A program made the position numbers and the translations under genes. Of a stretch of 64,000 nucleotides of DNA, positions 2,547 through 60,799 are shown in pieces; the stretch's first letter is position 1, and the number at the start of each line of letters is the position of its first letter. The stretch spans positions 434,001 through 498,000 of IMG/VR virus record IMGVR_UViG_3300049215_000771. One strand, written 5' to 3'. A model generated the notes under the pieces. The model searched no databases. It was not told the DNA's origin and saw only the letters and a program-made list of their open reading frames with translations.

Positions 2547-4175
2547 TTATTTAGAGTTATCTGGCGATATTCTCGTCAAAGCAGCAGCAATCAGCCCACG
2601 AAACAACGGCGCAGCCGCCGTCAGCCGACTTTTGAACTCCGGGTGAGCCTGCGTACCGATGAAATAAGGGTGTAGATTCCTGTCCAATTCCATCATTTCG
2701 ATGAGATCACTGCCTGGGTTTTTCCCACTTACCTTGAAACCTTTCGCCTCGAACTGAGAGATGTATTCCGGGTTGACTTCGTAGCGATGACGATGCCTCT
2801 CCTTCACCAACTTGGTTCCGTACAACTCCATCGCCAAGGAATCTTTCACCAAATCACAATCATAAGCCCCCAGGCGCATGGTGGCAGATTTCTTCTCCAG
2901 ACCCTCCTGGCCCTCTACGAAGTGAATAACAGGGTTCTTGGTGTCCTTGTTGAATTCCAGGCTGTGGGCGTCAACATGCCCCAGCACATTCCTGGCAAAC
3001 TCGATCACGGCGCACTGGAGGCCCAAGCAGATGCCCAGGAAAGGTATTTTCTTCTCTCGGACATACTGAATGGCTTTGATCTTCCCCTCGATGCCCCGAC
3101 TGTCAAAACCTCCGGGAACGATGATGCCATGCAGCCCTTCAAAGTGCTTGGCGAGTCCACGATTGTCTTTGTATTTCTCCAGGTCTTCGGCCTTGATCCA
3201 GCGAACATTCACCTTCACGTCATTGGCAATACCAGCGTGGATCAAAGCCTCCTTCAGCGACATATACGCTTCGTCACAGTTGTCATACTTGCCGAATACG
3301 CCAATCTCAACGCCCTGAAGGTGATTGTTGACGTACTTCTCCACGACTTCCCGGTACTTGTGGATGCTGCACCGGGAACGATTCAGGCGAAACAAATCAA
3401 CAAACATATCATCAACTTGACGTTCGTAGAAGCAAATAGGGACTTGGTAGATCGAGGAAACGTCGGGAGCGTCAAAAACTTGGGTTCGGGGCACGTTGGT
3501 CGTTCGAGACACTTTGTCGATGATTTTTTCCGGTAGCTGGCGGTCCACTCGGCAGAAAATCACATCGGGTTGAAGGCCGTGCCGTTGAAGTTCCTTGACG
3601 GAATTTTGCAAGGGCTTTGTCTTGAACTCCTTGATGGTATTCACCCACAAAATGGGAGCCACCAAAGCAACAAGAACATCGTCCCGGTACTCACCCTTGA
3701 ACTGCCTCATGGCCTCGTAGAAGGCGAAAGACTCACTATCGCCTACCGTCCCGCCAATCTCGGCGATGACTATATCGTTGGATTTTCCCAACTCCAGAAG
3801 CCGGTCCTGAATTTTGTCTGTCAGATGCGGCATGAGTTGGACGGTCTGGCCCAGGAACTTGCCCTTCTCCTGCTCGTCGATCAGTTCCTTGTACAATGTG
3901 CCAGACGTGGCGATATTGTCTTTTGACACAGTGATGCCACAGATGCGCTCGTAGTGGCCCAGGTCCAGGTCTGTTTCTGTACCATCATCGCACAAGAAAC
4001 ACTCGCCATGCTCACGAGGGGCGAGAATGCCGGCATTGACATTGAGGTAGGGGTCGAACTTGATGATGGTGACAGTGTGCCCACGCAGCTTGAGCAGCAA
4101 CCCAAGGCTTGCAGCCGAGACTCCTTTCCCTGTTCCACTGATTACACCGCCAGCCACAATGACGAATTTTGCCAT
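2547..4175 (-). CDS. pyrG: CTP synthase
   Basis: GGVISGTGKG, KFDPYLNV, GICLGLQ (catalytic Cys), RHRHRYEVN and QAHPEF motifs. Start taken at MAKF (4175). Confidence 0.97.
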   Translation of the reverse strand: MAKFVIVAGGVISGTGKGVSAASLGLLLKLRGHTVTIIKFDPYLNVNAGILAPREHGECFLCDDGTETDLDLGHYERICGITVSKDNIATSGTLYKELIDEQEKGKFLGQTVQLMPHLTDKIQDRLLELGKSNDIVIAEIGGTVGDSESFAFYEAMRQFKGEYRDDVLVALVAPILWVNTIKEFKTKPLQNSVKELQRHGLQPDVIFCRVDRQLPEKIIDKVSRTTNVPRTQVFDAPDVSSIYQVPICFYERQVDDMFVDLFRLNRSRCSIHKYREVVEKYVNNHLQGVEIGVFGKYDNCDEAYMSLKEALIHAGIANDVKVNVRWIKAEDLEKYKDNRGLAKHFEGLHGIIVPGGFDSRGIEGKIKAIQYVREKKIPFLGICLGLQCAVIEFARNVLGHVDAHSLEFNKDTKNPVIHFVEGQEGLEKKSATMRLGAYDCDLVKDSLAMELYGTKLVKERHRHRYEVNPEYISQFEAKGFKVSGKNPGSDLIEMMELDRNLHPYFIGTQAHPEFKSRLTAAAPLFRGLIAAALTRISPDNSK

Positions 4176-4250
4176 GACATTCCCGCTTTCTTCACACAAT
4201 AGATAAGTAATATCCTACCGTATTTAGGGTGAACCCGCCAGGTGTGAAAA

Positions 4251-4331: not shown

Positions 4332-5975
4332 TTAGCTTTCACAATTAGTACAAGCCAGGATGTTGCGACTAAATGCCTGTGCAGCATTGATGGAAATCTG
4401 GTAGTACAACGACTTGATTCCCATTTGCCACGCTTCGATGATGAGCGCATTCACATCCTTGATGGGAATCGAGGGATGAATCATCAAGTTGAGTGACTGC
4501 GATTGGTCAATGTACTTCTGCCGGCTTGCCGCCTGCATAATGACTTCCTTCGGGCTGATCTCGGCGAAGGTTTTGAACACATTCTTCTCCAACCCGGAAA
4601 GAAAATCCAGATGTTGAACGCTTCCTCCGTGTTTCAGAATGTCGGCCCACACTTCATCCGTGTTCTTTCCTTTCGCTTCAAGAACCTGCTCCAGATGCGG
4701 ATTTTTGACGGTCCACTTCCCCTTCTGCAAATCCTTGATGAAATAATTGGTTTTGTGTGGCTCGATACCTTCCGACACCTGCCCCAAAATAAAAGCCGAC
4801 GACTTGGTGGGCGCAATGGCAAGCAACGTGGTGTTACGCCGACCATATCCCTTCAGGACTTCTGGTTCGCCATATTCCTCGGCCATCTTCGCAGAAGCGG
4901 CGTAAGCCCTCTCCTTGATGTTCTTGGCGACTTCGACGTTGATCTGTTTCGCCTCCAGGCTCTCGAAGGCGATCATCTTGCTTTGAAGGTAGCTGTGCCA
5001 ACCAATCCAGCCAATACCGAGCGCACGGTGACGCTGGGCGAACTTGACAGCCCGCTTCATGAACCCGATCTTGCTGGCTTTCTGGATGAATTCCGTCATC
5101 ACAGCATCCAGGAAGTAAGTCAGCAACTCGACGGCGTTGGTATCTTTCCACTCGTCATACCGGAAGATATTCATGCTCGACAAATCACACACGAAGGACT
5201 CGTCACACGAGTCAGGAAGCATGATCTCGCTGCACAAATTCGAGTGCGAGATTCGCATCTTCTTGTTCTTGTAGCAGTCCACCGTGTTGTTGTTCGCATT
5301 GTCGCCGAACATGATGTACGGGAAGCCGATGTTGGCCCGGCATTCAAGTACCTTGGCCCATACTTTCCGCTTCTCGGCGTCCCCAGCAATCATCTCCTTC
5401 ATCCACCAGTCGGGCACGACCACCCCAAAAGACAAATCTTGAATGGGATTGCCCTCGCTCCGCATGGCGAGGAATTCCATGATGTCTTTGTGGTCGATGT
5501 CCAGGTAAGCGGCGAAATTGCCACGTCGGGTCCGACCCTGGGACACCACGTTGATGAGAAGGTCGAACAACTGCATGAAGTGAACACTGCCAGATGACTC
5601 GCCATTACGACGAATCTTAGAACCACGCCCACGCAGGTTGCCGAAGTAGCCAGACGTACCGCCGCCGTGCTTCGTCATCATCATGACTTCGGCGTGCGTG
5701 TAGGCAATGTCTTCGGTGTCATCAGCCATGTAGCTGCCGAAACACGAGATCGGCAGGCCACGGTCATTGCCAAAGTTCGTCCAGATGGGCGTACTGAGGC
5801 TGTACCAACCTTTCTGAATGTTTTCCTTGAACGCCTGGGCAAAACCAGGTTTGTTGAGAAGTTTTTCTGCTGCCCCGCAGATTTCATTTACCCGTTCATC
5901 GACGGTCTGCCCGTCCAAGTAGTCCCTTTCGAGAAACTGCTGAGACGCTTCTGTTAGCCATGTGTAACCTGTCAT
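4332..5975 (-). CDS. nrdA: Ribonucleotide reductase class Ia alpha subunit (short, no ATP cone)
   Basis: PISCF, SNLCSEI, APTKSSAFI, SQSLNL and KSLYY motifs. Confidence 0.95.
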   Translation of the reverse strand: MTGYTWLTEASQQFLERDYLDGQTVDERVNEICGAAEKLLNKPGFAQAFKENIQKGWYSLSTPIWTNFGNDRGLPISCFGSYMADDTEDIAYTHAEVMMMTKHGGGTSGYFGNLRGRGSKIRRNGESSGSVHFMQLFDLLINVVSQGRTRRGNFAAYLDIDHKDIMEFLAMRSEGNPIQDLSFGVVVPDWWMKEMIAGDAEKRKVWAKVLECRANIGFPYIMFGDNANNNTVDCYKNKKMRISHSNLCSEIMLPDSCDESFVCDLSSMNIFRYDEWKDTNAVELLTYFLDAVMTEFIQKASKIGFMKRAVKFAQRHRALGIGWIGWHSYLQSKMIAFESLEAKQINVEVAKNIKERAYAASAKMAEEYGEPEVLKGYGRRNTTLLAIAPTKSSAFILGQVSEGIEPHKTNYFIKDLQKGKWTVKNPHLEQVLEAKGKNTDEVWADILKHGGSVQHLDFLSGLEKNVFKTFAEISPKEVIMQAASRQKYIDQSQSLNLMIHPSIPIKDVNALIIEAWQMGIKSLYYQISINAAQAFSRNILACTNCES

Positions 5976-16168: not shown

Positions 16169-17644
16169 TCACGGTAGGCCCAATTCCTTGCGGGCAACTT
16201 TGTCAATCGGCAAAGGAGCGCCCATCACAGCCGTTCGTCCGCTCGTCGTCGTGGGGAAGGCGATAACTTCCTTCATCGAGTCCTCCTTGCACGCCAACAT
16301 CACCAGTCGGTCAATACCGAGAGCAATCCCTGCGTGTGGTGGAGTGCCGTAGTCGAAGGCTTCCAGCATATGCCCCACGCTGCGTTCGATCTCCGGTTGA
16401 GAATATCCCATTACCTTGTACGTTGCTTCCAGCATCGCCCTGGTATGTGCCCGAACGCTACCTGACCCGATCTCCATGCCGTTGCACACCAGGTCGTACT
16501 GATGAGCAACGATGTCACCCACGTTCTGACCCTGGAGTAGCCAATCACTGTGTTCTTCCAGCGGGGCCGAAAACGGGTTGTGCATGAAGGTCCACGAGGA
16601 CTTGCTGTCCAGCTTATCAACATCTTCCTTCGCCGGCTTGAACATTGGGAAGCGGACGATCCAGCAAAACATCAATGCGCCGGCGTCCTTCTGTGCCTGC
16701 GTCCTGATGTCGGGCTTGTCCGTGCCCCACCGATTCATCGCTTCTTCGTAGGTGAAGATCGGGAAGCTGTTGCCGATGCCGCCGAGATAGGGATAGCGTT
16801 TTAACTGCCCGCCTTCATAGGTCCACGGCTCGTAGAGTTCTTTTTCTTTCTCGTAGTCCCAAATCTTCAGCTTGTAGAAAATAGAACGAACAACTTCCGT
16901 AGCTGTGTGCAACACGCTACTTTCGGTGCCGAAAGCCATTTCCAGGTCAACCTGGGTAAACTCGAAGCCCCGGTCGGAACGAGGAGTCTCGTCCCTGAAG
17001 CACCGAGCAATCTGGTAGTAGGCCGGCACGCCACCCGTCATCAACAATTGCTTGTACTGCTGCGGGCTTTGTGGCAGGGCATAGAACTCGTTGTGGTAGA
17101 GCCGAGAAGGAACAACGAAGTCCCGTGCCCCTTCCTTTGTGGGAGCCGCCAAGATTGGCGTCTCGATCTCCAGAAAACCTCGCCCGTCCAGACACTCACG
17201 GATCGCCTGAAGGGTCTTGGCACGAACCCGAAGGTTGCGTGCCATACGCTTGCGGCGAAGGTCGATGTATCTGTAGCGAAGGCGCTTGTCGATGTCGGTT
17301 TCGTATCCGTCCGACTGAACTGTGATCGGCAGCGGCTTCGTGGCGTTGAGAACTTCGACGTTCCCGACCACGAACTCCACCTTGCCCGTGTACATATCGG
17401 GATTTTCCATGTGTTCAGGGCGGGCTTTCACCTGGCCATGAAACCTCACAACATCTTCGAGATTCAACCCGGCAAGGGTTTTGTTGCGACCGACACACTG
17501 CACGATGTAACCTTCACCATCCCGAAGGTCAATGAAGGTCATTTTGCCGTGGTCACGCTTGGCGTCCACCCACCCCTGGATGGAAAAAAGAGTCGAAGAC
17601 CCCGCCAAACGGACTGTGGACTCAATGCTTGTGTGTTGAGACAT
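16169..17644 (-). CDS. aspS: Aspartyl-tRNA synthetase, compact (GAD domain absent), non-discriminating signature
   Basis: OB fold GWV..KRDHG..FIDLRD; motif 2 QIARCFRDE; GTDKPDIR joined directly to FCWIVRFPMF; motif 3 GIDRL. Start MSQH at 17644. Confidence 0.93.
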   Translation of the reverse strand: MSQHTSIESTVRLAGSSTLFSIQGWVDAKRDHGKMTFIDLRDGEGYIVQCVGRNKTLAGLNLEDVVRFHGQVKARPEHMENPDMYTGKVEFVVGNVEVLNATKPLPITVQSDGYETDIDKRLRYRYIDLRRKRMARNLRVRAKTLQAIRECLDGRGFLEIETPILAAPTKEGARDFVVPSRLYHNEFYALPQSPQQYKQLLMTGGVPAYYQIARCFRDETPRSDRGFEFTQVDLEMAFGTESSVLHTATEVVRSIFYKLKIWDYEKEKELYEPWTYEGGQLKRYPYLGGIGNSFPIFTYEEAMNRWGTDKPDIRTQAQKDAGALMFCWIVRFPMFKPAKEDVDKLDSKSSWTFMHNPFSAPLEEHSDWLLQGQNVGDIVAHQYDLVCNGMEIGSGSVRAHTRAMLEATYKVMGYSQPEIERSVGHMLEAFDYGTPPHAGIALGIDRLVMLACKEDSMKEVIAFPTTTSGRTAVMGAPLPIDKVARKELGLP

Positions 17645-17897
17645 CGTATTCCTCGGTTTCCAAAGGTTCTGTATGTGTTGCCAAAGGCGGCGCAGGGTAG
17701 TGTTCGCACGGAGAAGGCCACCACACAAGTAGCGGCCCCATGACGTTGACTTCCCACCTTCCCCATCGCCCGCCCAAGGCTCGTCTGTAACCACGATACT
17801 CCCAAAAACGACTAGGTTCGCTCGCCTTGCCACGGAGTTTCTTCCAAAGCAAGATCAGGGACCACATGATTGTACTCCGTTTGTTTGAGGTTGTAAA

Positions 17898-22463: not shown

Positions 22464-23003
22464 ATGCTTGACGAATGGTTCAAATGCGCAGTGTGCGGAT
22501 CGAAAGAAGCACCCATCATGAGCATGGGGTACATTTCCCAATGCTATTGTCGAGATTGCGCCGACAACAAAAAAGAAGATTGCAACGCAGCCTTCAAGAA
22601 GGTCCACGACGAAGCTGTGCTTGAAGAAGCCTTTCGCCCCAAAATCAAACACGATGAAATTGACGTGAGAGATGATTACTTTCAGTACATCGTACAAAAC
22701 AAACAAGAACCAGAACTGGAGATGTGCTTCAGGAGAATTGCCGAGCAGGTGTACCTTCTAAAAACTACCACCAAGAAAGATTGGCATAACAACTGGCGCT
22801 GGATTCCTTTCATCGAAAACGTCGATAAAGGGACGTGGCAAGAAGTCCCCAAAGATTTTGTGGAGGCGGCGATCCCGTATTGTTACGACAGGTTGAAAAC
22901 ATACGATGCAGGCAGGGCCACAGCGAAAGATTACTTCACTGCGGCCTGCTGCGGTTTGTATGAGTATGCAAAACTGCACAACTGGCGAGATTGGGCGTAC
23001 TAA
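22464..23003 (+). CDS. Hypothetical protein with an N-terminal CxxC...CxxC
   Basis: CAVC...CRDC zinc-finger-like pattern. Confidence 0.5.
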   Translation: MLDEWFKCAVCGSKEAPIMSMGYISQCYCRDCADNKKEDCNAAFKKVHDEAVLEEAFRPKIKHDEIDVRDDYFQYIVQNKQEPELEMCFRRIAEQVYLLKTTTKKDWHNNWRWIPFIENVDKGTWQEVPKDFVEAAIPYCYDRLKTYDAGRATAKDYFTAACCGLYEYAKLHNWRDWAY

Positions 23004-24421
23004 TACAACTTCCGGTCTTCCGCCTCAAGAATCTTGCCCAAGTTGGGAAAGAAAATTTCCCACCACTCCGTCATCTCGTGCATGATGTCCTGGAGAGTGT
23101 CATAGATTGGGGTTTTCTTGCACTCCTCAATCCACTTGTCACAGTAGGTGTGCCAGAAGAAGTCCGTGAGGGTCTTCAAACCCAGCGGCCAGTTCAGGTC
23201 GTGTTCGATGTAGGTTTGTAATCTCCCAGCGGTCTTGATCCACTCCAGGTAGTATTCCTGGTTCTCTCCCCCAGGACAACCTGGCTCCCAATCCTCCAGC
23301 CCCCACTTCCCATTGCCGTGGATGAACCTGTAGGCATTGACCAGCTTGTTGAGCAGGGCTTTGCCTTTCTTCATGACGGCTTCATCACAGCGGGTGTCCG
23401 TGCCGACCTGGTTGCACGCCGCCCAATAACGAACACCCTCCATGCCGTACTTCTCAACGTAGACGTGCGGCTCGACGAAGTTGCCCGCCGTTTTGCTGAT
23501 CTTGTGGCCGTGCTTGTCCAGGGCGTGGCCGCTGATAATGATTTTCTTCCACGGAACCTGATCGCTGTGATAGAGACTTTTGACGATGGTGAAGAATGCC
23601 CACGTCCTGATGATGTCGTGCGCCTGGAACCTGGCGTCGAAGATCGGGGGATGAAGGGTAGGAATCTTCGTGTGTGCCGCCCACGTCATCTGCGGCGACA
23701 AGCTGGAAGTAAACCAGGTGTCAAAAACGATGTTGTCGGGTTCCCCCGGAATGTGGATGCCGTAGTTACGCTCACGGGAAATAGACCAATCCATCGTGAG
23801 GCCATCCAGCCAGCGATGCAGCCGCTCCTGAAAGACCTTGGGATGCCACTGGATCAGGTCGATAGCCTGCCTGAGACGGTCCAGGTGGTCACGGATGTTG
23901 ATGAACCAGCCCTCGCCTGTCCGTAGCTCGACTTTCTCACCAGAACGCTCGTAGCGGCCTTCCTCGTCGATCTCGGCCTGAGAAACGGAGACACGGGTTT
24001 TGGGGCACCAGAAATAGTCCCTGACGGCTTTGTAGGCGTAGCCCTTCTTGACCAGATCGTGGAACGACATCTCGGCCAAGGCGATGGCGTGGCGGTCATA
24101 GGTGTGGTAGTGATGCTTGCTCCAGCCCATGCCGATTTGTTGGAACAAGTCGGAGTACATCTTCGACGTATTCTCGGCAAACCTGACGATACCGGGCGTA
24201 TCGAAGATTTTGTCCTTCTGTGCCAACTTCTCGGTCGGCAGGCCGTTGCAATCAAAACAGAAAGGGTACAGAAGGGGGTCTTCCTTCTGGCCATCTTCGG
24301 TGAGATGGAAACGCTTGGCCCTGGCAACAAAGTCCATGTGGCAGTACGAGAAAACATGGCCCATATGCAACAGGCCAGAGATCGTCGGCGGCGGAACGTC
24401 GATAAGGTATTTTGGGTCCAT
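23000..24421 (-). CDS. valS: Valyl-tRNA synthetase-like, minimal (CP1 editing domain and C-terminal coiled coil absent)
   Basis: PPPTISGLLHMGH (HIGH), DCNGLPTE, DWSISR, QAHDIIRTW and KISKTAGN (KMSKS). Start MDPK at 24421. Confidence 0.85.
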   Translation of the reverse strand: MDPKYLIDVPPPTISGLLHMGHVFSYCHMDFVARAKRFHLTEDGQKEDPLLYPFCFDCNGLPTEKLAQKDKIFDTPGIVRFAENTSKMYSDLFQQIGMGWSKHHYHTYDRHAIALAEMSFHDLVKKGYAYKAVRDYFWCPKTRVSVSQAEIDEEGRYERSGEKVELRTGEGWFINIRDHLDRLRQAIDLIQWHPKVFQERLHRWLDGLTMDWSISRERNYGIHIPGEPDNIVFDTWFTSSLSPQMTWAAHTKIPTLHPPIFDARFQAHDIIRTWAFFTIVKSLYHSDQVPWKKIIISGHALDKHGHKISKTAGNFVEPHVYVEKYGMEGVRYWAACNQVGTDTRCDEAVMKKGKALLNKLVNAYRFIHGNGKWGLEDWEPGCPGGENQEYYLEWIKTAGRLQTYIEHDLNWPLGLKTLTDFFWHTYCDKWIEECKKTPIYDTLQDIMHEMTEWWEIFFPNLGKILEAEDRKLY

Positions 24422-24604
24422 GCCAGATGATACTACGATTTTGTGAGTTTGTAAGGTCGCAATTGTTTTTCGGTGAGCGGTATCCACGGCAAATCGGGAC
24501 GATTTTCCATGCACCCGCCACAAGGACGAGAAACGTCCTTGTGGCAGGGATGGACTCTATCTTCCGGGAGGAAACCCACGTCCTTGGCGTATCTCCAAGG
24601 ACAT

Positions 24605-28072: not shown

Positions 28073-28558
28073 CTACGTCCCCTCAATCTCCCGAATGTAG
28101 TGGCGAGCCATTTCAATGCCGCTGGGGTTGGGAATCATTGCCGCCTTCTGTCCCAGGAGGCAGGCGGCGATGAGGGCCGCATCCAAAGGCGGAACCGCCG
28201 CAAAGGTCGGCCCAGGCCCGGTGATCCTCACCATGCTGATATGATACCGATGAGGCGTGCAGTAGGTATCTTTCGACATCTCCACCGAGATGATGCAGTG
28301 GTCATCACGGCGACGGTCGATCACCCGGCACAAACCAACCTCAACCTGCCACATGCCGTTTCGAGGGCATTTGTCGGGATTCTCCACCTGCCATCGACTG
28401 CGCTCCACTGCTTCGCATTCGGTGTTGGAGTACACCGGGCTTTCTTCAGCCGGGTACTTGTCCGCAGCTTCCCTCATCTCGACGCCCATCTGAATCATGG
28501 CGGCGATGGTGTAGGGAACGAAATCATCAGGACTTCGCTTCTTCGTTTCCATAGTCAT
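28073..28558 (-). CDS. Hypothetical protein
   Basis: Start trimmed to MTMETKK to limit overlap with thrS. Confidence 0.5.
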   Translation of the reverse strand: MTMETKKRSPDDFVPYTIAAMIQMGVEMREAADKYPAEESPVYSNTECEAVERSRWQVENPDKCPRNGMWQVEVGLCRVIDRRRDDHCIISVEMSKDTYCTPHRYHISMVRITGPGPTFAAVPPLDAALIAACLLGQKAAMIPNPSGIEMARHYIREIEGT

Positions 28559-29753
28559 ACCCGAAATCGAACTCGTTGAGGTAAGCTGCCTCGGCGAAGA
28601 AATCTCGCTTCGGCAAGGTCTTGTTAGTTCCGTCCCGCTCTCGAACAGTGACGGTTTCGGCTTCCACTTCCCGGTCCCCGATGATGAGCATTCGGGGGAT
28701 GTATTTCTCCTGAGCGATGGCAACCATCTGCGCCACCCGTTTGCCGGAAAGATCAACCATCGGACGAAGTTTCCAGTTCTCCAGCTTCACCTTCAGATCG
28801 AAACAGTAGCCCCTGGCCTTGTCAGTAACAGGCAGGATGGCGTACTGAATGGGGGCGAGCCACACAGGAAGGTGCCCCTGGTAGTGTTCGAGCAGGATGC
28901 CGATGAACCGCTCGAAGCTGCCATAAATGGCACGGTGTACAACCACAGGGGTTTTGCGGGCGTTGTCATGGTCAGTGTACTCCAAACCGAACCGAATGGG
29001 AAGCTGGAAATCCAACTGAATCGTTGCGGTCTGCCATTCCCGGCCTTGGCTGTCTTTCACGAAGAAGTCGATCTTGGGGCCGTAGAATGCCCCTCCACGG
29101 GGGTCTTCGGTGTAATTGGCGTAAGAACCCTGGAGCGAGGCCCGAAGATCGTCTTCAGCCTTGTCCCAGGTCGCCACTTCGCCCATGAAGTTCACCGGCC
29201 TGGTGGACAGCACGGCCCGGAGTTCCATGCCCAGCTTCCAATAGACACGCTGGACCATGACACAAAGCATGGTGATTTCTTTGTCGATTTGATCGGGAGC
29301 GAGGAAGATGTGAGCGTCGTCCTGGCAGAAGGAGCGACAGCGAGTGAGGCCGCTGAGAGCGCCGGAAACCTCGTCACGATGCAGAACACCTTGGTCGGCG
29401 ATGCGGAGGGGAAGTTCTTCGATGGAGCGAGCGCCTTTGGCCTTGTAGATTTCCATGTGGCCGGGGCAGTTCATTGGTTTCGGGATCAACAGGACATCTT
29501 CATCTTTGCCGTGGACCCCGAACATATTCTCTTTGTAGTGTTCCCAATGCCCGGAGATTTCGTACAACTCACGCTTCCACAGGATCGGAGTGCGTACTTC
29601 CTGGTAGTTCCATTGCTTCTGGATGGCCCGAATCTTGTCCTGGAGGATGGTGTAAACGATGTTGCCGTTGGGAAGCCAGATGGGGCAGCCGGGGGCCAGG
29701 TCGGAGAACATGAACAGGTCCATCTCACGACCGATTTCACGATGATCTTTCAT
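28527..29753 (-). CDS. thrS: Threonyl-tRNA synthetase lacking N1/N2 (editing) domains
   Basis: Begins at DHREIG; KPMNCPGH, HRDE.SGAL.GLTR.R.F.QDDAHIF, GGAFYGPKID, IHRA-type VVHRAIYGSFERF and an anticodon-binding domain. Confidence 0.95.
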   Translation of the reverse strand: MKDHREIGREMDLFMFSDLAPGCPIWLPNGNIVYTILQDKIRAIQKQWNYQEVRTPILWKRELYEISGHWEHYKENMFGVHGKDEDVLLIPKPMNCPGHMEIYKAKGARSIEELPLRIADQGVLHRDEVSGALSGLTRCRSFCQDDAHIFLAPDQIDKEITMLCVMVQRVYWKLGMELRAVLSTRPVNFMGEVATWDKAEDDLRASLQGSYANYTEDPRGGAFYGPKIDFFVKDSQGREWQTATIQLDFQLPIRFGLEYTDHDNARKTPVVVHRAIYGSFERFIGILLEHYQGHLPVWLAPIQYAILPVTDKARGYCFDLKVKLENWKLRPMVDLSGKRVAQMVAIAQEKYIPRMLIIGDREVEAETVTVRERDGTNKTLPKRDFFAEAAYLNEFDFGYDYGNEEAKS

Positions 29754-30319: not shown

Positions 30320-30340
30320 CGTGGTCCTCCTTCAAGTTCA

Positions 30341-30578
30341 GAGAACCATCCCCGTAGCCTGGATTCTGTTCTATGTCGTCATTTATCTCAGGTTTCCCTG
30401 GCCTTGCGGCTGCACCAACCAGACCGTCACAGCCCTGCTCACCGGCTAGGTCAAATTTGGCTTGCACCCTCCGAAGTGCGAACGATACTTCCCTTGCGGG
30501 TGTCTCTCCTTCGTTAAGCAGTAGTGTCCAGAACTTCCTCTAAGGATTACTCCCCAGCGACGACTCGGAATGGTTCTC
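30341..30578 (-). ncRNA. rnpB: Minimal type-A RNase P RNA
   Basis: Helices paired by hand: P1 GAGAACCATTCC/GGGATGGTTCTC; P2 GTCGTCG/TGACGAC; P3 GTAA hairpin; P4 AGT(T)CTGGA/TCCAGGCT with bulged U; P6 CTGCTTA/TGAGCAG; P15-P17. Conserved GAGGAAG, GCAAGCCAAAT, AGATAAATG and AACAGAA..C.GGCTA. Confidence 0.88.
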
Positions 30579-46938: not shown

Positions 46939-48141
46939 TCATTTCTTCAACACCACCGAAGAACCATCGCTCCGATCCCGAATCTCACAACCCAGGTCGA
47001 TGATCCTTCTTTTCAGGGCATCGGCCCCAGCCCAATTTCGCTGCCGCCTGCATTCCTCTCGGAGTTTGGCAAGCTGGATGGCGTCGTCGGGAGCATCCTC
47101 ATCCGAGAACATCTGGAAACCGAGTAATTCGGCTTGCTCCAGGCTGGGATTCACGAAAGTCGCTGCGATGGCTTCCGAAGTATTCAGGTTGGCGTCCATC
47201 GCCTTGGCGAAATCTTCCGAAACTCCATGTTCTGGTGCCGACTTCAGCCGATTCCTCAAAGCCTTCCACTGTTGCGCCGAAGTCCCATCCAACAACCCTT
47301 CAACGGATAAAGGTTTGGCATAACTGGCCGAGAGAATCCAGAAGCGAATCACGTTGGGGTCCGTGCCATTCGCCCGATAGTCCCGGATGTTGACGGCGTT
47401 CCCCTCGGATTTTCCCATCCTCCTGTCGCCGATCTGAACCATCCCATTGTGGAGCCAGATGTCCGCCAAGGGCGATCCGGCATGAAGGCATTCGGACTGA
47501 GCGATCTCATTCTCGTGATGCGGAAACTTCAAATCGTCGCCGCCCACATGAATATCCACCGTGAACCCAATGGTCCTTTCAATCATGATGGAGCATTCAA
47601 GATGCCAACCAGGTCGCCCCTTGGGGAATTCAGACTCATTGGCCTTCGGCCCCTTCCACAAAACGAAATCTTCCGCCGTTTTCCGACGTGAAAGTTTCCC
47701 ATATCCAGGGAACGTCTTCGTTTTGAAGCGAATGTCGCCATCTTTGTGGTAAGCATGGCCACTTTCGACAAGCGCCGTAGCTGCAACCTTCATCGGGATC
47801 ATGTAGTCCGTCACACGGGGGTACAAGTCCGCCTTCTGGACGTTCAGCCAGCCCATGTCATTGAAATAGTCGTCGATGAAGCGGTCAGCCAGTTCTTTGC
47901 TGGTCACGCCCTCCTTTGCCGCCCGATCCACGATTTTGTCGTCCACGTCCGTAAAATTCTGAACGTGGTAGACCTTCTGCCGGCGTTTGAGCCAGCGTTT
48001 CAGCACGTCCCACACAACATAGCTCCTGGCGTGTCCCAGGTGGCAGTAGTCGTAGACCGTTACACCACAAGCGTACATAGTGATCGGGCGGTCACTAGGG
48101 ACTTCTTTTTCACGCCGGGTTAGGGAGTCGTGCAGTTTCAT
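46939..48141 (-). CDS. cysS: Cysteinyl-tRNA synthetase (compact)
   Basis: YACGVTVYDYCHLGHARS, NFTDVDDKI, GRPGWHLECS, FPHHENE and MGKSEGN motifs; start MKLHD at 48141. Confidence 0.95.
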   Translation of the reverse strand: MKLHDSLTRREKEVPSDRPITMYACGVTVYDYCHLGHARSYVVWDVLKRWLKRRQKVYHVQNFTDVDDKIVDRAAKEGVTSKELADRFIDDYFNDMGWLNVQKADLYPRVTDYMIPMKVAATALVESGHAYHKDGDIRFKTKTFPGYGKLSRRKTAEDFVLWKGPKANESEFPKGRPGWHLECSIMIERTIGFTVDIHVGGDDLKFPHHENEIAQSECLHAGSPLADIWLHNGMVQIGDRRMGKSEGNAVNIRDYRANGTDPNVIRFWILSASYAKPLSVEGLLDGTSAQQWKALRNRLKSAPEHGVSEDFAKAMDANLNTSEAIAATFVNPSLEQAELLGFQMFSDEDAPDDAIQLAKLREECRRQRNWAGADALKRRIIDLGCEIRDRSDGSSVVLKK

Positions 48142-48177
48142 GCGCCCATAGTACCCCGATTTAGAAGAAGTGTAAAG

Positions 48178-48256
48178 TAGCCTCGGTGGGAGTCGAACCC
48201 ACATCCTTTCGGCACCGGGTTTAAGCCGGCTGCGTATACCGTTCCGCCACGAGGCC
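48178..48256 (-). tRNA. tRNA-Leu(TAA)
   Basis: GCCGG-CTTAAAC-CCGGT, V arm, A73. Confidence 0.9.
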
Positions 48257-48301
48257 ATTCAACCAAATCGGTTGAAAGTTGGTGTTTTCAACCGATTTGG
48301 T

Positions 48302-49536: not shown

Positions 49537-49627
49537 CGGAAGAGAAGGGAATTGAACCCTTGCCGGACAATTAAGCCGGGCCAGTTTTCGAGACTGGTGC
49601 AGCAATCACAACATCTGCCTCTCTTCC
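49537..49627 (-). tRNA. tRNA-Ser(CGA)
   Basis: CCAGT-CTCGAAA-ACTGG, V arm, G73. Confidence 0.9.
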
Positions 49628-51477: not shown

Positions 51478-51969
51478 TCATCCTACCCCCGTTGGCGGAT
51501 TGACCGGGGGCTTAACTTTCTTCGGCTTCGGCAAGCTGGGAGCGTCAGGTTTGTCCTGCCCACTACCACGAGCCTTTGTCTGGACGTAAAACACGAAAGA
51601 AGTTTTGTTCTCGAATGCCTGGGACGGCGAGTCGGTTTCCCGGTAAACCAGTTGTAGTTTTGTCTGAGGCGTCTCAAAATTGAGAAATTCCTTCAGACGA
51701 GCGAGTACCGAGCCAATGAACTCAGGTGAGCCGGTGATCCGAACGCCGTCCTGGGCATACGTCGTACCTTGGTGATCGTACCGAATCGGCGACATCTGGA
51801 TCGGCGTATCTGGCCGAAGATTTCGCCAATACTGTACAATCTGGTCCTTAGTCGCCTTCCATTTCTTCTGGACAGGCTTCTTCGAGGGCGTTCCCTGGAC
51901 CGGCTGTGCTGTCGGTTTTGGTTGTGCCTCCCCAGGTTGTTCGTTCATCCACTCGCTGAAACTCTTCAT
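51478..51969 (-). CDS. Putative internal virion protein with a capsid-targeting-like N-terminus
   Basis: Start MKSFSEWMNE at 51969; Pro/Lys-rich ends. Confidence 0.5.
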   Translation of the reverse strand: MKSFSEWMNEQPGEAQPKPTAQPVQGTPSKKPVQKKWKATKDQIVQYWRNLRPDTPIQMSPIRYDHQGTTYAQDGVRITGSPEFIGSVLARLKEFLNFETPQTKLQLVYRETDSPSQAFENKTSFVFYVQTKARGSGQDKPDAPSLPKPKKVKPPVNPPTGVG

Positions 51970-52493
51970 ACCAAGTATGTAGAGCGTGCGAGTTGTTTTC
52001 ACGGCGGATTCGGCGGCTCATGCACTTCTTGACGTAATGCCAACGACCGGCATTTTTCGCCATGCAATCCCGCCAACGATGCGGAGGCGAACCAACACAG
52101 TCATGTTCGTCGCCATTCCGGGCCTTGTAGCGATGTCCCATCATGTAAGACTCCTTGGTTAGAGACTTACATTGGACACCTTGCCTTTCCTCTCATGGGT
52201 TCCTCCCGCACACTGACTGTGCGTATTTGTCACAAGTCTTCGAGCATCGGGATGGGTGGGCCGAGAAACTTCAGCGGCATCCTCTCACCCTTCATCTCAA
52301 ATTCGCACGGATCGTTGTAGTGTTTTCGCCTCTCATCAAGGCATTTTCCGTCTTTATACCATTGGCAGCCAGGGCAGGCAGCGAAAATTTGCCAGTCGGT
52401 TGCAATGATGGGCAGCTTCTTCAGTTGTTTGCAGTACATATAGCACCTTCTTTCAGGAAGGTATACTGCAAATAACACGCCAAAGGACTGTAG

Positions 52494-53084
52494 TTAGTGG
52501 CTTACCTCCGACTTGTTCTTGGCATCTCGCTCGGCCTGGACCTTGGCAAAATCCCATTCGGCATCCATCAGGTCTTCGACCAGGCGCTCCGTTCCGGCCA
52601 GCATATCATCGCCTCGCTCCAGCAATTCCCACCACTTGGGAACCTTCTTCAGCTTCTTGTCGAACTCCTGGGCCAGCCAATGAGAGTTTGCTTCCTCGCC
52701 AGGCGGGTTGAAACCCATCAATTCGACGCCATGAATCGTCCAAAGTGTCACGACCCGACCGGGAACCGGCCCACGTTCATATTCGTCCTGATGCGGCGGA
52801 TCGTAGGGTTCCTTCTTCGTGAGCCAGTTTATGTACTCAGCGGTGTTATGCCTGTCGTCGGCGAAATCGCCACGGTTCTTGACTTCGCCGGTCGGATAGC
52901 CGTCGTGGTCGATGCCATAGAACTCGACGAGGAACCACCGCTTGTCATCTCGATACTTCGCCGGTTGACGATGCTCCCAATAACAGATAACCCCATAGGG
53001 TCGCTCATGTTTGGCTGGTTCTGCTTGGGCTTGAACCTCAGTCTGAGGCTCACCCTGATAGTGATGTTTCTCTCGCTTCGGCAT
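52494..53084 (-). CDS. Hypothetical protein
   Basis: GAGAGG RBS just after the atypical tRNA-Tyr. Confidence 0.6.
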   Translation of the reverse strand: MPKREKHHYQGEPQTEVQAQAEPAKHERPYGVICYWEHRQPAKYRDDKRWFLVEFYGIDHDGYPTGEVKNRGDFADDRHNTAEYINWLTKKEPYDPPHQDEYERGPVPGRVVTLWTIHGVELMGFNPPGEEANSHWLAQEFDKKLKKVPKWWELLERGDDMLAGTERLVEDLMDAEWDFAKVQAERDAKNKSEVSH

Positions 53085-53098
53085 GACAACCTCTCAAG

Positions 53099-53184
53099 TG
53101 GGCACTGAGGGAGTTGAACCCCTCGACGACCGCCTGGATGTTTAACGTCACGAGTTTTACAGACTCGCACCAGGAACAGCGCCC
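53099..53184 (-). tRNA. Atypical tRNA-Tyr(GTA)-like gene without a normal D arm
   Basis: GGGCGCT/AGTGCCC acceptor, A73; only 10 nt before CGAGT-CTGTAAA-ACTCG; ~26-nt variable region; T arm with one extra G. Confidence 0.65.
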
Positions 53185-53241
53185 AAATCATACCCCAATT
53201 TTAGGGCATTGTAAACCAGGTCTTGCTAACTACAATTCACC

Positions 53242-53673
53242 ATGCACAAAAACTCCAAGAAACAAGGTGATGCCTGCCTCGGTGGTGCAATCGCTTATTT
53301 CACTCACAAGGGCTACGGCGTATCAATACCATTAACCGACAGTCAGGATTATGACCTGATCGTAGACATTGACGACACGCTCAATCGTGTGCAAGTCAAA
53401 ACTACTTATTTCGCTCGCCCAAACAGCAAGGGACAATTGGAATACTACGTTTCTCTTTCTACCAAGGGCGGCAACAAATCACGCCAAACCATCAAATACT
53501 TCGATCCGAACCGTGTCGAAATACTGTACATCGTCACGCACGGCGGGGATCACTACTGTATCCCGATGAAGGATGGTTTCAGCGCCAAAAGCACACTTAG
53601 GTTGTCCTCCAAATACGACCGTTACAAAGTGCATCCGGCAGGAATCGAACCTGCAAGTCCCGAAGGAAGCTGA
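53242..53673 (+). mobile_element. PD-(D/E)XK homing endonuclease, I-Ssp6803I-like, antisense between two tRNA-Tyr genes
   Basis: QGD...AIAYF..KGY.VSIP..DSQDYDLIVD.....RVQVKT; own TACAAT 5 nt before the ATG; 3' end overlaps tRNA-Tyr. Confidence 0.8.
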
Positions 53674-53713
53674 TTTACAGTCAGCTAGGCCCACCACACT
53701 GCCCAACGGATGC
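53630..53713 (-). tRNA. tRNA-Tyr(GTA)
   Basis: GCATCCG/CGGATGC, GCTGA-CTGTAAA-TCAGC, V arm. Confidence 0.9.
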
Positions 53714-54213
53714 GTTCGTAGCCAACACTCATTTACACGGTTCAACGACGACGGCGACATGCGCCGGCGTTTCCATCGGCCTCCAGTTCATGGCCTTGTA
53801 GTCGAAAAACATATCGACAAAACCCAGGACCAGTTCCTTCTCCAACGGCAGTTTGTAATTGTCCACGATGGTCAACTGCCCTACCCGCCCCATCTGCGGA
53901 ACGTCCATCTCATAATAGCACAACTGGAGAGCGTGCAGTCCGAGACGGATGTACTTGTTGTACTCCTTGCAAGCCGAAGTAGCGTCCGGCCCATGAATCC
54001 TCAACATCGGGCCGACCATTTCTTTGTCCACTGTCTCGTCTGCCTGAGCAGTTTTGCACGCCTTCAGGAAGTCGAATGGCGGATCAGCCTTCGCCTTTGC
54101 CTTCATCTGTTCGACCAGCGACTCCAATTCCTCCCAAGAAACTTCCTTGTAAAACAAGTCGCCGTTTTCGTCTTTCAGGTTGAAACCAAACATTTCAGGT
54201 TCTCCAAGGCGAG

Positions 54214-54289
54214 TAGCCGGGAGGGGACTCGAACCCCTAAGACTCTAGGTTTGAGCTAGAGATGTCTGCCAAGATTGCATCACCCGGCC
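54214..54289 (-). tRNA. tRNA-Leu(CAA) with a short variable loop
   Basis: TCTAG-CTCAAAC-CTAGA; variable region GTCTT (5 nt); A73. Confidence 0.85.
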
Positions 54290-54658
54290 AAATCTTCCAA
54301 CAACTGATCCACACAACTTTCCAGGTCCACCAGCGATTCACCCTCGAAAGTGAATTCCAACAAATGTTCCGCTTCAACATCCCTCATCTCAGGCATGAAT
54401 GGATACGCCTTCAAGAAGGCTCTCGTCTTGTCGGGATATTCCTCGTCCCAAAACAAGTGCAAGTTCGTCTTGCCGAAGCGACCAACATGGGTCACACACT
54501 GACACTTCTTCTGGCAGAACTCCTTGATCTCCTTCAGAATCTCGAAACTGAGCAGCTTGAACTGGAACGTCACAGCCCTGGTCTGGACCTGAACCTCCAG
54601 GTCGTCACCCAGCATTACATCCCAATTGTCAGTATGGGCCACCGCCGCCACGCCAGAC

Positions 54659-54904
54659 TCAGCCATCTTTCGTTACCACCGTTCCTTCTGGAATCTCAAC
54701 ATCTTGAATGTTGCGAAACATCAAGGCCACTCCCTCGCCGGCCTTGGCGGACTCCCTCAAGCGAGCGTAGTTTTCGATGGCGGACAGGACGGCGGTGTGC
54801 GAGCCGATGGTCAGTTTCTCACCAACCCGCACATCGCATTCCAGTCTGCCAACAAGCTGTGTGCCCTTGACTCGGTACACACGCTCAACGGTCATCACCT
54901 TCAT
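54659..54904 (-). CDS. Stand-alone EF-Tu domain II-like protein
   Basis: RVYRVKG..LVGRLE..VRVGEKL...AIE......SAKAGEGVALMFRNI...EIPEGTVV parallels EF-Tu domain II. Confidence 0.7.
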   Translation of the reverse strand: MKVMTVERVYRVKGTQLVGRLECDVRVGEKLTIGSHTAVLSAIENYARLRESAKAGEGVALMFRNIQDVEIPEGTVVTKDG

Positions 54905-55187
54905 TGAATTCCTTCAACTGTTCCTTGAAGGACAATTCCGACAAGATTTCGTGTTCGTGTTTGCTCCGCTTGGGAAACTTGTCACTGTGGCAGACTCCAC
55001 ACTGAGTATTGCCGCAGTCCCAGGCGTCCTTCTTGCGGAACCGACCGATCTGTTCGTCGCATTCACAATCAACGACGTAGGGATCAGCGCCGATCTTGCC
55101 TCGGTCCTTGTTGCTCTCGACGTGCATACGCCGATGTTTCTTCCACTCACGACGAGCAATCCGCTCATCTTCGTGCCATCGTTTCAT
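54885..55187 (-). CDS. Hypothetical basic Cys-rich protein
   Basis: GRFRKKDAWDCG..QCGVCH. Confidence 0.55.
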   Translation of the reverse strand: MKRWHEDERIARREWKKHRRMHVESNKDRGKIGADPYVVDCECDEQIGRFRKKDAWDCGNTQCGVCHSDKFPKRSKHEHEILSELSFKEQLKEFNEGDDR

Positions 55188-55678
55188 CAGTACCTCCGTA
55201 ATGGGAATAGAAGTTAGGCTTCTGTTCCCCGGAGATACGAACGAAATTACACATGGCTACTCCTGCATGTAGGGCAAAGAACTGTCCAATCTTCCCAGGA
55301 ATGGCCCCCTTCAGTCCTGGTGATGTCTTCAACCAGCCACCCCGCATCTTTGGCTACTTGTGCCATACTTGCCCAGGTAGCTCCCGGCTCGTGCTGTTTG
55401 CCGTCCTCGTAGGTGTTGCATTTCTCGCAAATGAACCCGGCATAAACCAGCGCCACAAGTTCATATGGGTCGTCAGCATTAGTCGCTTCCATCGCCCTCG
55501 CTCTCCTTAACATGCTTGTCGAATTCTTCCATCAACATCTCGGTCTGAGCGACCAATTCCGGTGATGGCTCCGTTGTCCAGGGGATAGAAGGAACCTTCA
55601 TTCGCCACTTGCGACAAGTACACCAGTGAGTTTCCGTTTTACGGGTGAACTTCATTTCGTGTCTGATCTTACCCATAG

Positions 55679-55755
55679 TGCCCAGGGTGGGACTCGAACC
55701 CACAAGACCCTCGTTCTGAGCGAGAGATGTCTGCCTATTTTTGCATCACCTGGGC
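55679..55755 (-). tRNA. tRNA-Leu(CAG) with a short variable loop
   Basis: TCTCG-CTCAGAA-CGAGG; variable region GTCTT; A73. Confidence 0.85.
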
Positions 55756-55870: not shown

Positions 55871-57052
<1,182 letters not shown>

Positions 57053-57735: not shown

Positions 57736-57826
57736 TTGGCAAGGTGGGATTCGATACCCACACGGTAGATTCGTCAACCTACCAACCCCCTCTAGCGGGG
57801 GCTGCGTCTTCTTCCGCCACTTGCCA
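57736..57826 (-). tRNA. tRNA-like RNA with an aberrant anticodon loop (GCTAGA) and 8-nt T loop
   Basis: TGGCAAG/CTTGCCA, A73; CCCCC-GCTAGA-GGGGG; 8-bp V arm; GTGGG-TATCGAAT-CCCAC. Confidence 0.6.
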
Positions 57827-60717: not shown

Positions 60718-60799
60718 TGCCTCCCCAGGGGATTGAACCCTAACCTTCTGCTTTTCAGGCAGATGTGCAGACCAAATGGAACCACTACACCAGAGAGGC
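60718..60799 (-). tRNA. tRNA-Phe(GAA) with an enlarged D loop
   Basis: TCTGC-CTGAAAA-GCAGA; D region GTGTAGTGGTTCCATTTGGTCTGCAC. Confidence 0.75.

Follow-up and report, generated by a model that had tools for sequence, protein, structure and literature searches.

The analysed sequence (the window, 64,000 nucleotides) covers positions 434001-498000 of the 532,729-bp viral record IMGVR_UViG_3300049215_000771, which has a G+C content of 52.7%; runs that hold this stretch come from moss metagenomes. On the minus strand, an 86-nt tRNA-like gene lies in a 157-nt divergent intergenic region (Table 1). It is followed by an orphan ORF, whose start codon is located 15 nt after the element, while a PD-(D/E)XK endonuclease-like ORF, the only plus-strand gene in this stretch, lies between the element and a canonical class II tRNA-Tyr(GUA), 444 nt away. 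The endonuclease ORF overlaps the canonical tRNA-Tyr on the opposite strand and looks like a free-standing homing endonuclease in a tRNA region, as SegB is in T4/T6. The orphan ORF has no Pfam family, no relatives in viral contigs and matches only itself among 5.8 billion proteins. As its single database entry lies on a 673,178-bp contig, the viral record may be a trimmed part of a larger assembly.

The genome contains about 65 tRNA hits, including a true tRNA-Sec and three CUA-anticodon tRNAs, and these genes are sorted by class. The end of the contig covered by the window holds almost only long-arm tRNAs (Leu, Ser, Tyr) plus Phe, with about 18 tRNA hits on the minus strand between 38.8 and 63.1 kb that are spaced by small ORFs, while the other end holds the short-arm tRNAs on the plus strand. 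In addition, the phage encodes AspRS, a short ValRS-like protein, a ThrRS lacking the N-terminal part, CysRS and EF-Tu within the window, and a TyrRS (TIGR00234, 274 bits, with a weak S4 domain) and a CCA-adding-like enzyme elsewhere. A shortened RNase P RNA is also encoded, and a phage-borne RNase P RNA consisting of the catalytic domain only might bear on the processing of tRNAs with an altered elbow.

Table 1. Features of the element and its surroundings. Positions refer to the window unless stated otherwise.
Position	Strand	Feature	Remarks
53099..53184	-	Whole gene of the non-canonical tRNA-Tyr(GUA), 86 nt	G1 at 53184, discriminator A at 53099; no CCA encoded
53177..53184	-	Acceptor stem, 5' strand, GGGCGCUG	8 nt, pairs with 53100-53107; 8 bp with one G.U; all 8 pairs in 175 of 190 relatives, double changes in 7 of the 8 pairs
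53175..53176	-	UU linker after the acceptor stem	Same in all members, but specified in the search pattern
53170..53174	-	CCUGG, 5' strand of the helix that stands in for the D stem	Pairs with 53133-53137; U at 53169 is unpaired here, in most relatives it is a C that forms a 6th pair
53150..53168	-	Anticodon arm	Stem GCGAGU/ACUCGU, 53168-53163 with 53155-53150; loop CUGUAAA at 53162-53156; anticodon GUA at 53160-53158
53146..53149	-	Variable stem, 5' strand GACG	Pairs with 53125-53128
53138..53145	-	5' part of the variable loop, UUAAACAU	Links the variable stem to the pseudoknot strand; A/U-rich in the whole family
53133..53137	-	CCAGG, 3' strand of the D-replacing helix	Inside the variable loop
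53129..53132	-	CGGU	Invariant GG at 53131-53130, just after the pseudoknot strand
53125..53128	-	Variable stem, 3' strand CGUC
53108..53122	-	T arm, preceded by GA	4-bp stem GGGG/CCCU (outer pair G.U), canonical loop UUCAACU
53099..53107	-	Acceptor stem, 3' strand, CAGUGCCC (53107-53100), and discriminator A73 (53099)
53629..53713	-	Canonical class II tRNA-Tyr(GUA)	Called by ARAGORN; Rfam tRNA 51.6 bits; copies with 90-91% identity in contigs L003 and L004
52494-53084	-	Orphan ORF	196 aa
53242-53673	+	PD-(D/E)XK endonuclease	143 aa; PF11645, E 7e-18; last 45 nt overlap the canonical tRNA-Tyr
55871-57052	-	Full-length bacterial-type EF-Tu	TIGR00485, 590 bits; in the middle of the class II tRNA genes; copies 68-81% identical in other large viral contigs (L001-L010)
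30339-30576	-	Shortened bacterial class A RNase P RNA	238 nt, 53.4 bits (threshold 100), E 1e-15; P1-P4 and the conserved GAGGAA and ACAGAA cores kept; about 110 model positions of the specificity domain reduced to 22 nt
16169-17833, 23000-24523, 28527-29753, 46939-48258; genome 245.3-246.5 kb and 257.2-257.8 kb	- (window positions)	AspRS, ValRS-like protein, ThrRS, CysRS, TyrRS and CCA-adding-like enzyme	ValRS-like protein 507 aa, below the family cut-off
2547-4199		CTP synthase
4332-5975		Ribonucleotide reductase
Genome record (G000:C1) 80837-80929; window 57736-57826; genome 121393-121540	+; -; +	tRNA-Sec and three tRNAs with a CUA anticodon (amber readers)	tRNA-Sec 76.5 bits, above threshold
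38882-63080; genome 145-55586	-; +	tRNA genes sorted by class
49537-49627, 55679-55755, 60726-60791; genome 4872-4970, 13184-13277, 25615-25716, 27217-27314, 498893-499001	- (window positions)	Further tRNA-model hits that ARAGORN misses or labels as undetermined	Several 94-109 nt long (possible introns or other odd structures)

Structure of the element

Between the acceptor stem and the anticodon stem, the element contains only an 8-nt linker, UUCCUGGU, which leaves no room for a D arm. The 27-nt variable region consists of a 4-bp stem enclosing a 17-nt loop, and the CCUGG segment of the linker is exactly complementary to CCAGG in this loop. This pairing crosses the variable stem and thus constitutes a pseudoknot. 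In the preliminary description, the element was proposed to be a tRNA-Tyr-like RNA in which a variable-loop pseudoknot replaces the D arm, representing either a new tRNA architecture or a decoy. The description is accurate and the architecture reading is supported, but two additional pairs proposed there (UG with CA across a bulged U) find no support in relatives. Instead, G17 is the conserved G.U partner of U35, and position 16 is normally a C that pairs with the base just 5' of the loop strand.

ARAGORN did not call the element at default or lowered thresholds, and its intron and metazoan-mitochondrial modes gave no sensible call either. The Rfam tRNA model RF00005 gave no hit at E<=1 at genome positions 487099-487185. 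Only the tRNA-Sec model (RF01852) aligns end to end, at 32.6 bits against a gathering score of 47, and it does so by deleting its 6-bp D stem. An alignment with the neighboring canonical tRNA-Tyr was not meaningful, so the element is not a recent duplicate, and no paralogues were found in the 532-kb genome.

Covariation and family size

The orphan ORF could not be used to find syntenic loci, but the phage EF-Tu led to 37 viral loci. In two of these, L006 and L007, blastn detected a copy of the element with 76.5% identity, identical in both contigs over the element. The gapless 86-nt alignment with L006:7794-7879 shows 21 differences, of which sixteen form eight fully compensated pairs: two in the acceptor stem, two in the linker/variable-loop helix (G-C to C-G and G-C to A-U), three in the anticodon stem and one in the variable stem (G-C to A-U). 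The other five differences lie in the variable loop. All 54 cells pair, and sliding the partners gives only 0-1 double changes. A covariance model built from these two sequences (R1) found further copies in the large viral contigs L003, L004 and L032 at E values of about 1e-13; all have GUA, and each has its own version of the helix, CCUUA/UAGGG and CCACA/UGUGG.

Initial narrow DNA patterns found nothing in viral contigs, or only the two contigs already known, but a degenerate pattern and covariance models recovered 190 distinct relatives from viral, metagenome and mostly Planctomycetota contigs, while about 0.06 matches would be expected by chance according to a rough estimate. The same design recurs in over 200 phage tRNA clusters and bacterial tRNA arrays. 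Searches of cultured-phage records by blastn returned only the canonical tRNA-Tyr when the region was used as query and nothing with a typical family member, although blastn is weak at this length and absence is not demonstrated. An anchor-based count, which does not rely on an alignment model, showed that in 170 of the 190 distinct sequences all four variable positions of the 5' strand pair with the four bases just before the invariant GG. The 190 sequences contain 46 different 5' tetramers, and shifted registers give a mean of only 0.9-1.6 of 4 pairs.

On a model-guided alignment of 81 distinct sequences, 94% of cells are paired, against 39-54% when the partners are slid; 21 of 28 pairs show double changes, and 0 of 500 shuffles reach the observed values. 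The D-replacing helix is 95.9% paired, with double changes in four of its six pairs. At one position the pair types are U-A 35, C-G 27, G-C 10, A-U 6 and G-U 3, with none unpaired; C-G, U-A, A-U and G-C occur at a second, and A-U, G-C, C-G and U-A at a third. Several columns (GUUCC, UG-C, the T loop) are invariant partly because the search pattern specified them, and model-guided alignments lean towards the nested pairs of the model. However, the anchor count and the variable stem are free of this bias: the variable stem was not part of the search model, and its second pair nevertheless covaries (C-G 35, G-C 23, U-A 7, A-U 6). The GG that follows the loop strand is also truly conserved, because a pattern that did not require GG-N-GG returned the same 90 GUA-anticodon viral loci, all of which contain it. 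The G8-C pair is kept in 79 of 81 sequences and the would-be fifth T-stem pair is mostly A.C, showing that acceptor and T stems are arranged as 8/4, forming a 12-bp acceptor branch. A second model (R2), built from 61 relatives without the window copy or L006, scores the window element at 91.4 bits (E 1e-23), while the canonical tRNA-Tyr scores 25 bits and every other tRNA in the window 26 bits or less.

Inferred three-dimensional arrangement

The G17.U35 pair at the top of the anticodon stem is kept in 80 of 81 sequences and never covaries, and in this respect it resembles the 26.44 pair of ordinary tRNAs. The strand before it (positions 11-16) would then occupy the place of the 3' strand of a D stem and stack on the anticodon stem, while the loop strand (positions 47/48-52) would occupy the place of the 5' strand. 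The latter is followed by N-GG, where the D loop would offer G18-G19 to the T loop. According to this inference, the L shape is preserved with a 12-bp acceptor/T branch, a stacked anticodon limb and an elbow, but the chain runs through them in a different order, and the A/U-rich 5' half of the variable loop would serve as the connector.

Evidence for a tRNA function

The element combines a canonical T loop with a 7-nt anticodon loop containing U33 and a purine at position 37. GUA, A73, G1-C72 and a long variable arm, which probably make up the bacterial Tyr identity set (PMC9976931), are all present in the window copy. In the family, A73 is found in 178 of 178 GUA members, G1-C72 in 170 of 190, and CCA is encoded in 96 of 190. 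The two members with a GCA anticodon carry U73, the cysteine discriminator, a joint change expected only if synthetases read these molecules. The same D-armless scaffold occurs with other anticodons (contigs L040, L099, L138, L142, L158, L162, L178, L181, L193 and others; L222, L243; L070:7010-7095), namely UAU (9 distinct, with C1-G72 and A73), UCU and the two GCA sequences, and seems to have been reused for rare-codon or other identities.

Of 264 occurrences, 230 have another tRNA gene within 1 kb and 187 have three or more. Only 29 loci contain another GUA tRNA, so the element is usually the Tyr member of its cluster. ARAGORN misses 255 of the 264 occurrences, and phage tRNA sets and tRNA arrays therefore look as if they lack tRNA-Tyr. 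In the complete chromosomes of two cultured planctomycetes, Lacipirellula limnantheis I41 and Schlesneria sp. T3-172, the element fills an otherwise empty gap between tRNA-Leu(CAA) and tRNA-Glu(CUC) inside arrays of 27-39 tRNA genes. The array of L. limnantheis I41 (chromosome 5,955,540-5,960,640) contains about 30 tRNA genes in 5 kb and duplicates tRNAs that the chromosome also has elsewhere; L. limnantheis also has a canonical tRNA-Tyr at the usual Thr-Tyr-Gly-Thr locus. The array is flanked by ordinary genes (FGGY kinase, SPFH/Band 7, BNR repeat) with no integrase within 3 kb, and the only support for horizontal spread is the patchy distribution, as 6 of 151 sampled Planctomycetota genomes carry a member. 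The element is therefore an accessory gene and not the housekeeping one. The related large viral contigs L003, L004, L006 and L032 all keep both the canonical and the unusual Tyr gene, which argues that the two are not redundant.

These data indicate that the element is most likely (probability about 0.75) a functional gene for a structurally non-canonical class II tRNA-Tyr(GUA), although there is no direct evidence for its expression, mature ends, CCA addition or charging, or for acceptance of a tRNA without a D arm by TyrRS, EF-Tu and the ribosome. It is inferred that the transcript is cut by RNase P and a 3' nuclease, receives CCA, is charged with tyrosine and reads UAY codons. In the window copy the D-replacing helix comprises 5 rather than 6 bp. 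In four metatranscriptome runs from moss or plant samples, contigs identical to neighboring ORFs (51500-52991, 53728-54261, 55091-55248) were found within 51500-55500, but none covers this gene or the canonical tRNA-Tyr; as these are contigs of ordinary RNA-seq libraries, which capture tRNAs poorly, the result is uninformative. A sigma-70-like site ends 3 nt before the tRNA 5' end, too close to be a convincing start.

Relation to known tRNAs

The closest functional counterpart is the bacterial class II tRNA-Tyr, exemplified by the phage's own copy. It shares the GUA anticodon in a CUGUAAA loop, G1-C72, A73, a long variable region, the canonical T loop and the location among tRNA genes, but the element lacks the D arm, has 8/4 instead of 7/5 acceptor/T stems and carries a 17-19-nt variable loop, half of which pairs with the 5' linker. 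The acceptor branch resembles that of the (8/4) tRNAs and allo-tRNAs of bacteria and phages (Mukai et al. 2017, PMC5389517), which also have a long variable arm, occur in phage tRNA gene clusters and metagenomes and give weak tRNA-Sec-model hits. However, those tRNAs keep a D arm and were reported for Ser, His, Cys and Sec identities, and neither a tyrosine species nor a D-arm replacement is described in that study. With tRNA-Sec, the element shares the extended acceptor stem, the 6-bp anticodon stem and the long variable arm, but it has GUA instead of UCA and a 12-bp rather than a 13-bp branch.

In mammalian mt-tRNA-Ser(AGY) and nematode mt-tRNA-Ser(UCU), a short connector likewise replaces the D arm of a working tRNA (PMC7609411). 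These mitochondrial tRNAs are miniaturised, have no long variable arm and no replacement helix or pseudoknot, and depend on organelle-specific factors, while here the lost helix is rebuilt from the variable loop, in phages and bacteria. The family would represent a natural counter-example outside organelles, a tRNA that keeps the parts needed for an L shape but wires them differently. It bears on how much of the D arm is really needed by RNase P, the CCA-adding enzyme, TyrRS, EF-Tu and the ribosome, and is a candidate orthogonal tRNA for engineering. No Rfam 15 model reaches its threshold for the element, and no description of this architecture was found in the literature that could be searched, which covered subscription journals and supplementary material only incompletely. 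It is therefore considered a new structural variant of tRNA.

Possible role in escape from defence nucleases

Septu and retron-Eco7 PtuAB stop phages by cutting tRNA-Tyr in its variable loop or stem. The tRNA-Tyr of phage T5 resists because of its distinctive variable loop, and a homing endonuclease in the T6 tRNA region helps escape by amplifying tRNA-Tyr (PMC13096335, PMC11555353). T5 tRNA-Tyr is also located in a tRNA region with free-standing homing endonucleases, but is described there with an ordinary cloverleaf. Separately, tRNA arrays have been called putative anti-defence elements (PMC12803027). A variable arm locked in a pseudoknot would be a poor substrate for such nucleases, providing the phage or array with a tRNA-Tyr that survives attack, and this would explain why tyrosine in particular has this form and why it exists beside a normal tRNA-Tyr. 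This proposal rests on E. coli systems and remains tentative, being less likely than not. A still broader scenario, in which a widespread, so far unannotated structural class of bacterial and phage tRNA arose and spread in phage tRNA sets and mobile tRNA arrays as a tRNA-Tyr that these nucleases cannot cut, and has begun to be reused for other anticodons (Cys, AUA, AGA), remains possible but is likewise less likely than not.

Alternative interpretations

The element could be a structured tRNA mimic that is not used in translation, for example a decoy or sponge that occupies tRNA-Tyr-directed nucleases or another tRNA-binding factor and so protects the real tRNA-Tyr. The coexistence with a canonical tRNA-Tyr in this phage and its relatives, the role of tRNA-Tyr as a known defence target and the possibility that loss of the D arm impairs ribosomal use would agree with this. 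However, a decoy for a nuclease that recognises the variable arm should keep that arm, which is the part that changed here, and most clusters hold no other GUA tRNA. Encoded CCA ends and the matched change of anticodon and discriminator matter for charging and not for a decoy, making this reading unlikely, although it is not excluded. Similarly improbable is charging with an amino acid other than tyrosine by a synthetase that reads the long variable arm and A73 rather than the anticodon, as LeuRS does, which would cause deliberate recoding of UAY. The UAU and UCU anticodons with A73 in a subfamily could mean that the synthetase ignores the anticodon, and 8/4 tRNAs with mismatched identity are known (PMC5389517). 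On the other hand, 178 of 190 members keep GUA with (mostly) G1-C72 and A73, they occupy the Tyr slot in otherwise complete arrays, and the switch of the GCA members to U73 is expected for anticodon-matched identity.

A decayed duplicate of tRNA-Tyr that lost its D arm by deletion, with fortuitous complementarity, is very improbable. The rejection by ARAGORN and the Rfam tRNA model and the adjacent homing-endonuclease-like gene, a setting in which gene remnants arise, would be in line with a pseudogene, but this is contradicted by the compensated substitutions in every helix across the 190 distinct sequences, and substitutions outside loops are almost all compensated. A cis-acting leader that regulates the orphan ORF, suggested by the position of the element directly upstream of its ribosome-binding site, is equally remote, because this ORF has no relatives, while the RNA has hundreds, nearly always among tRNA genes rather than upstream of a conserved ORF.
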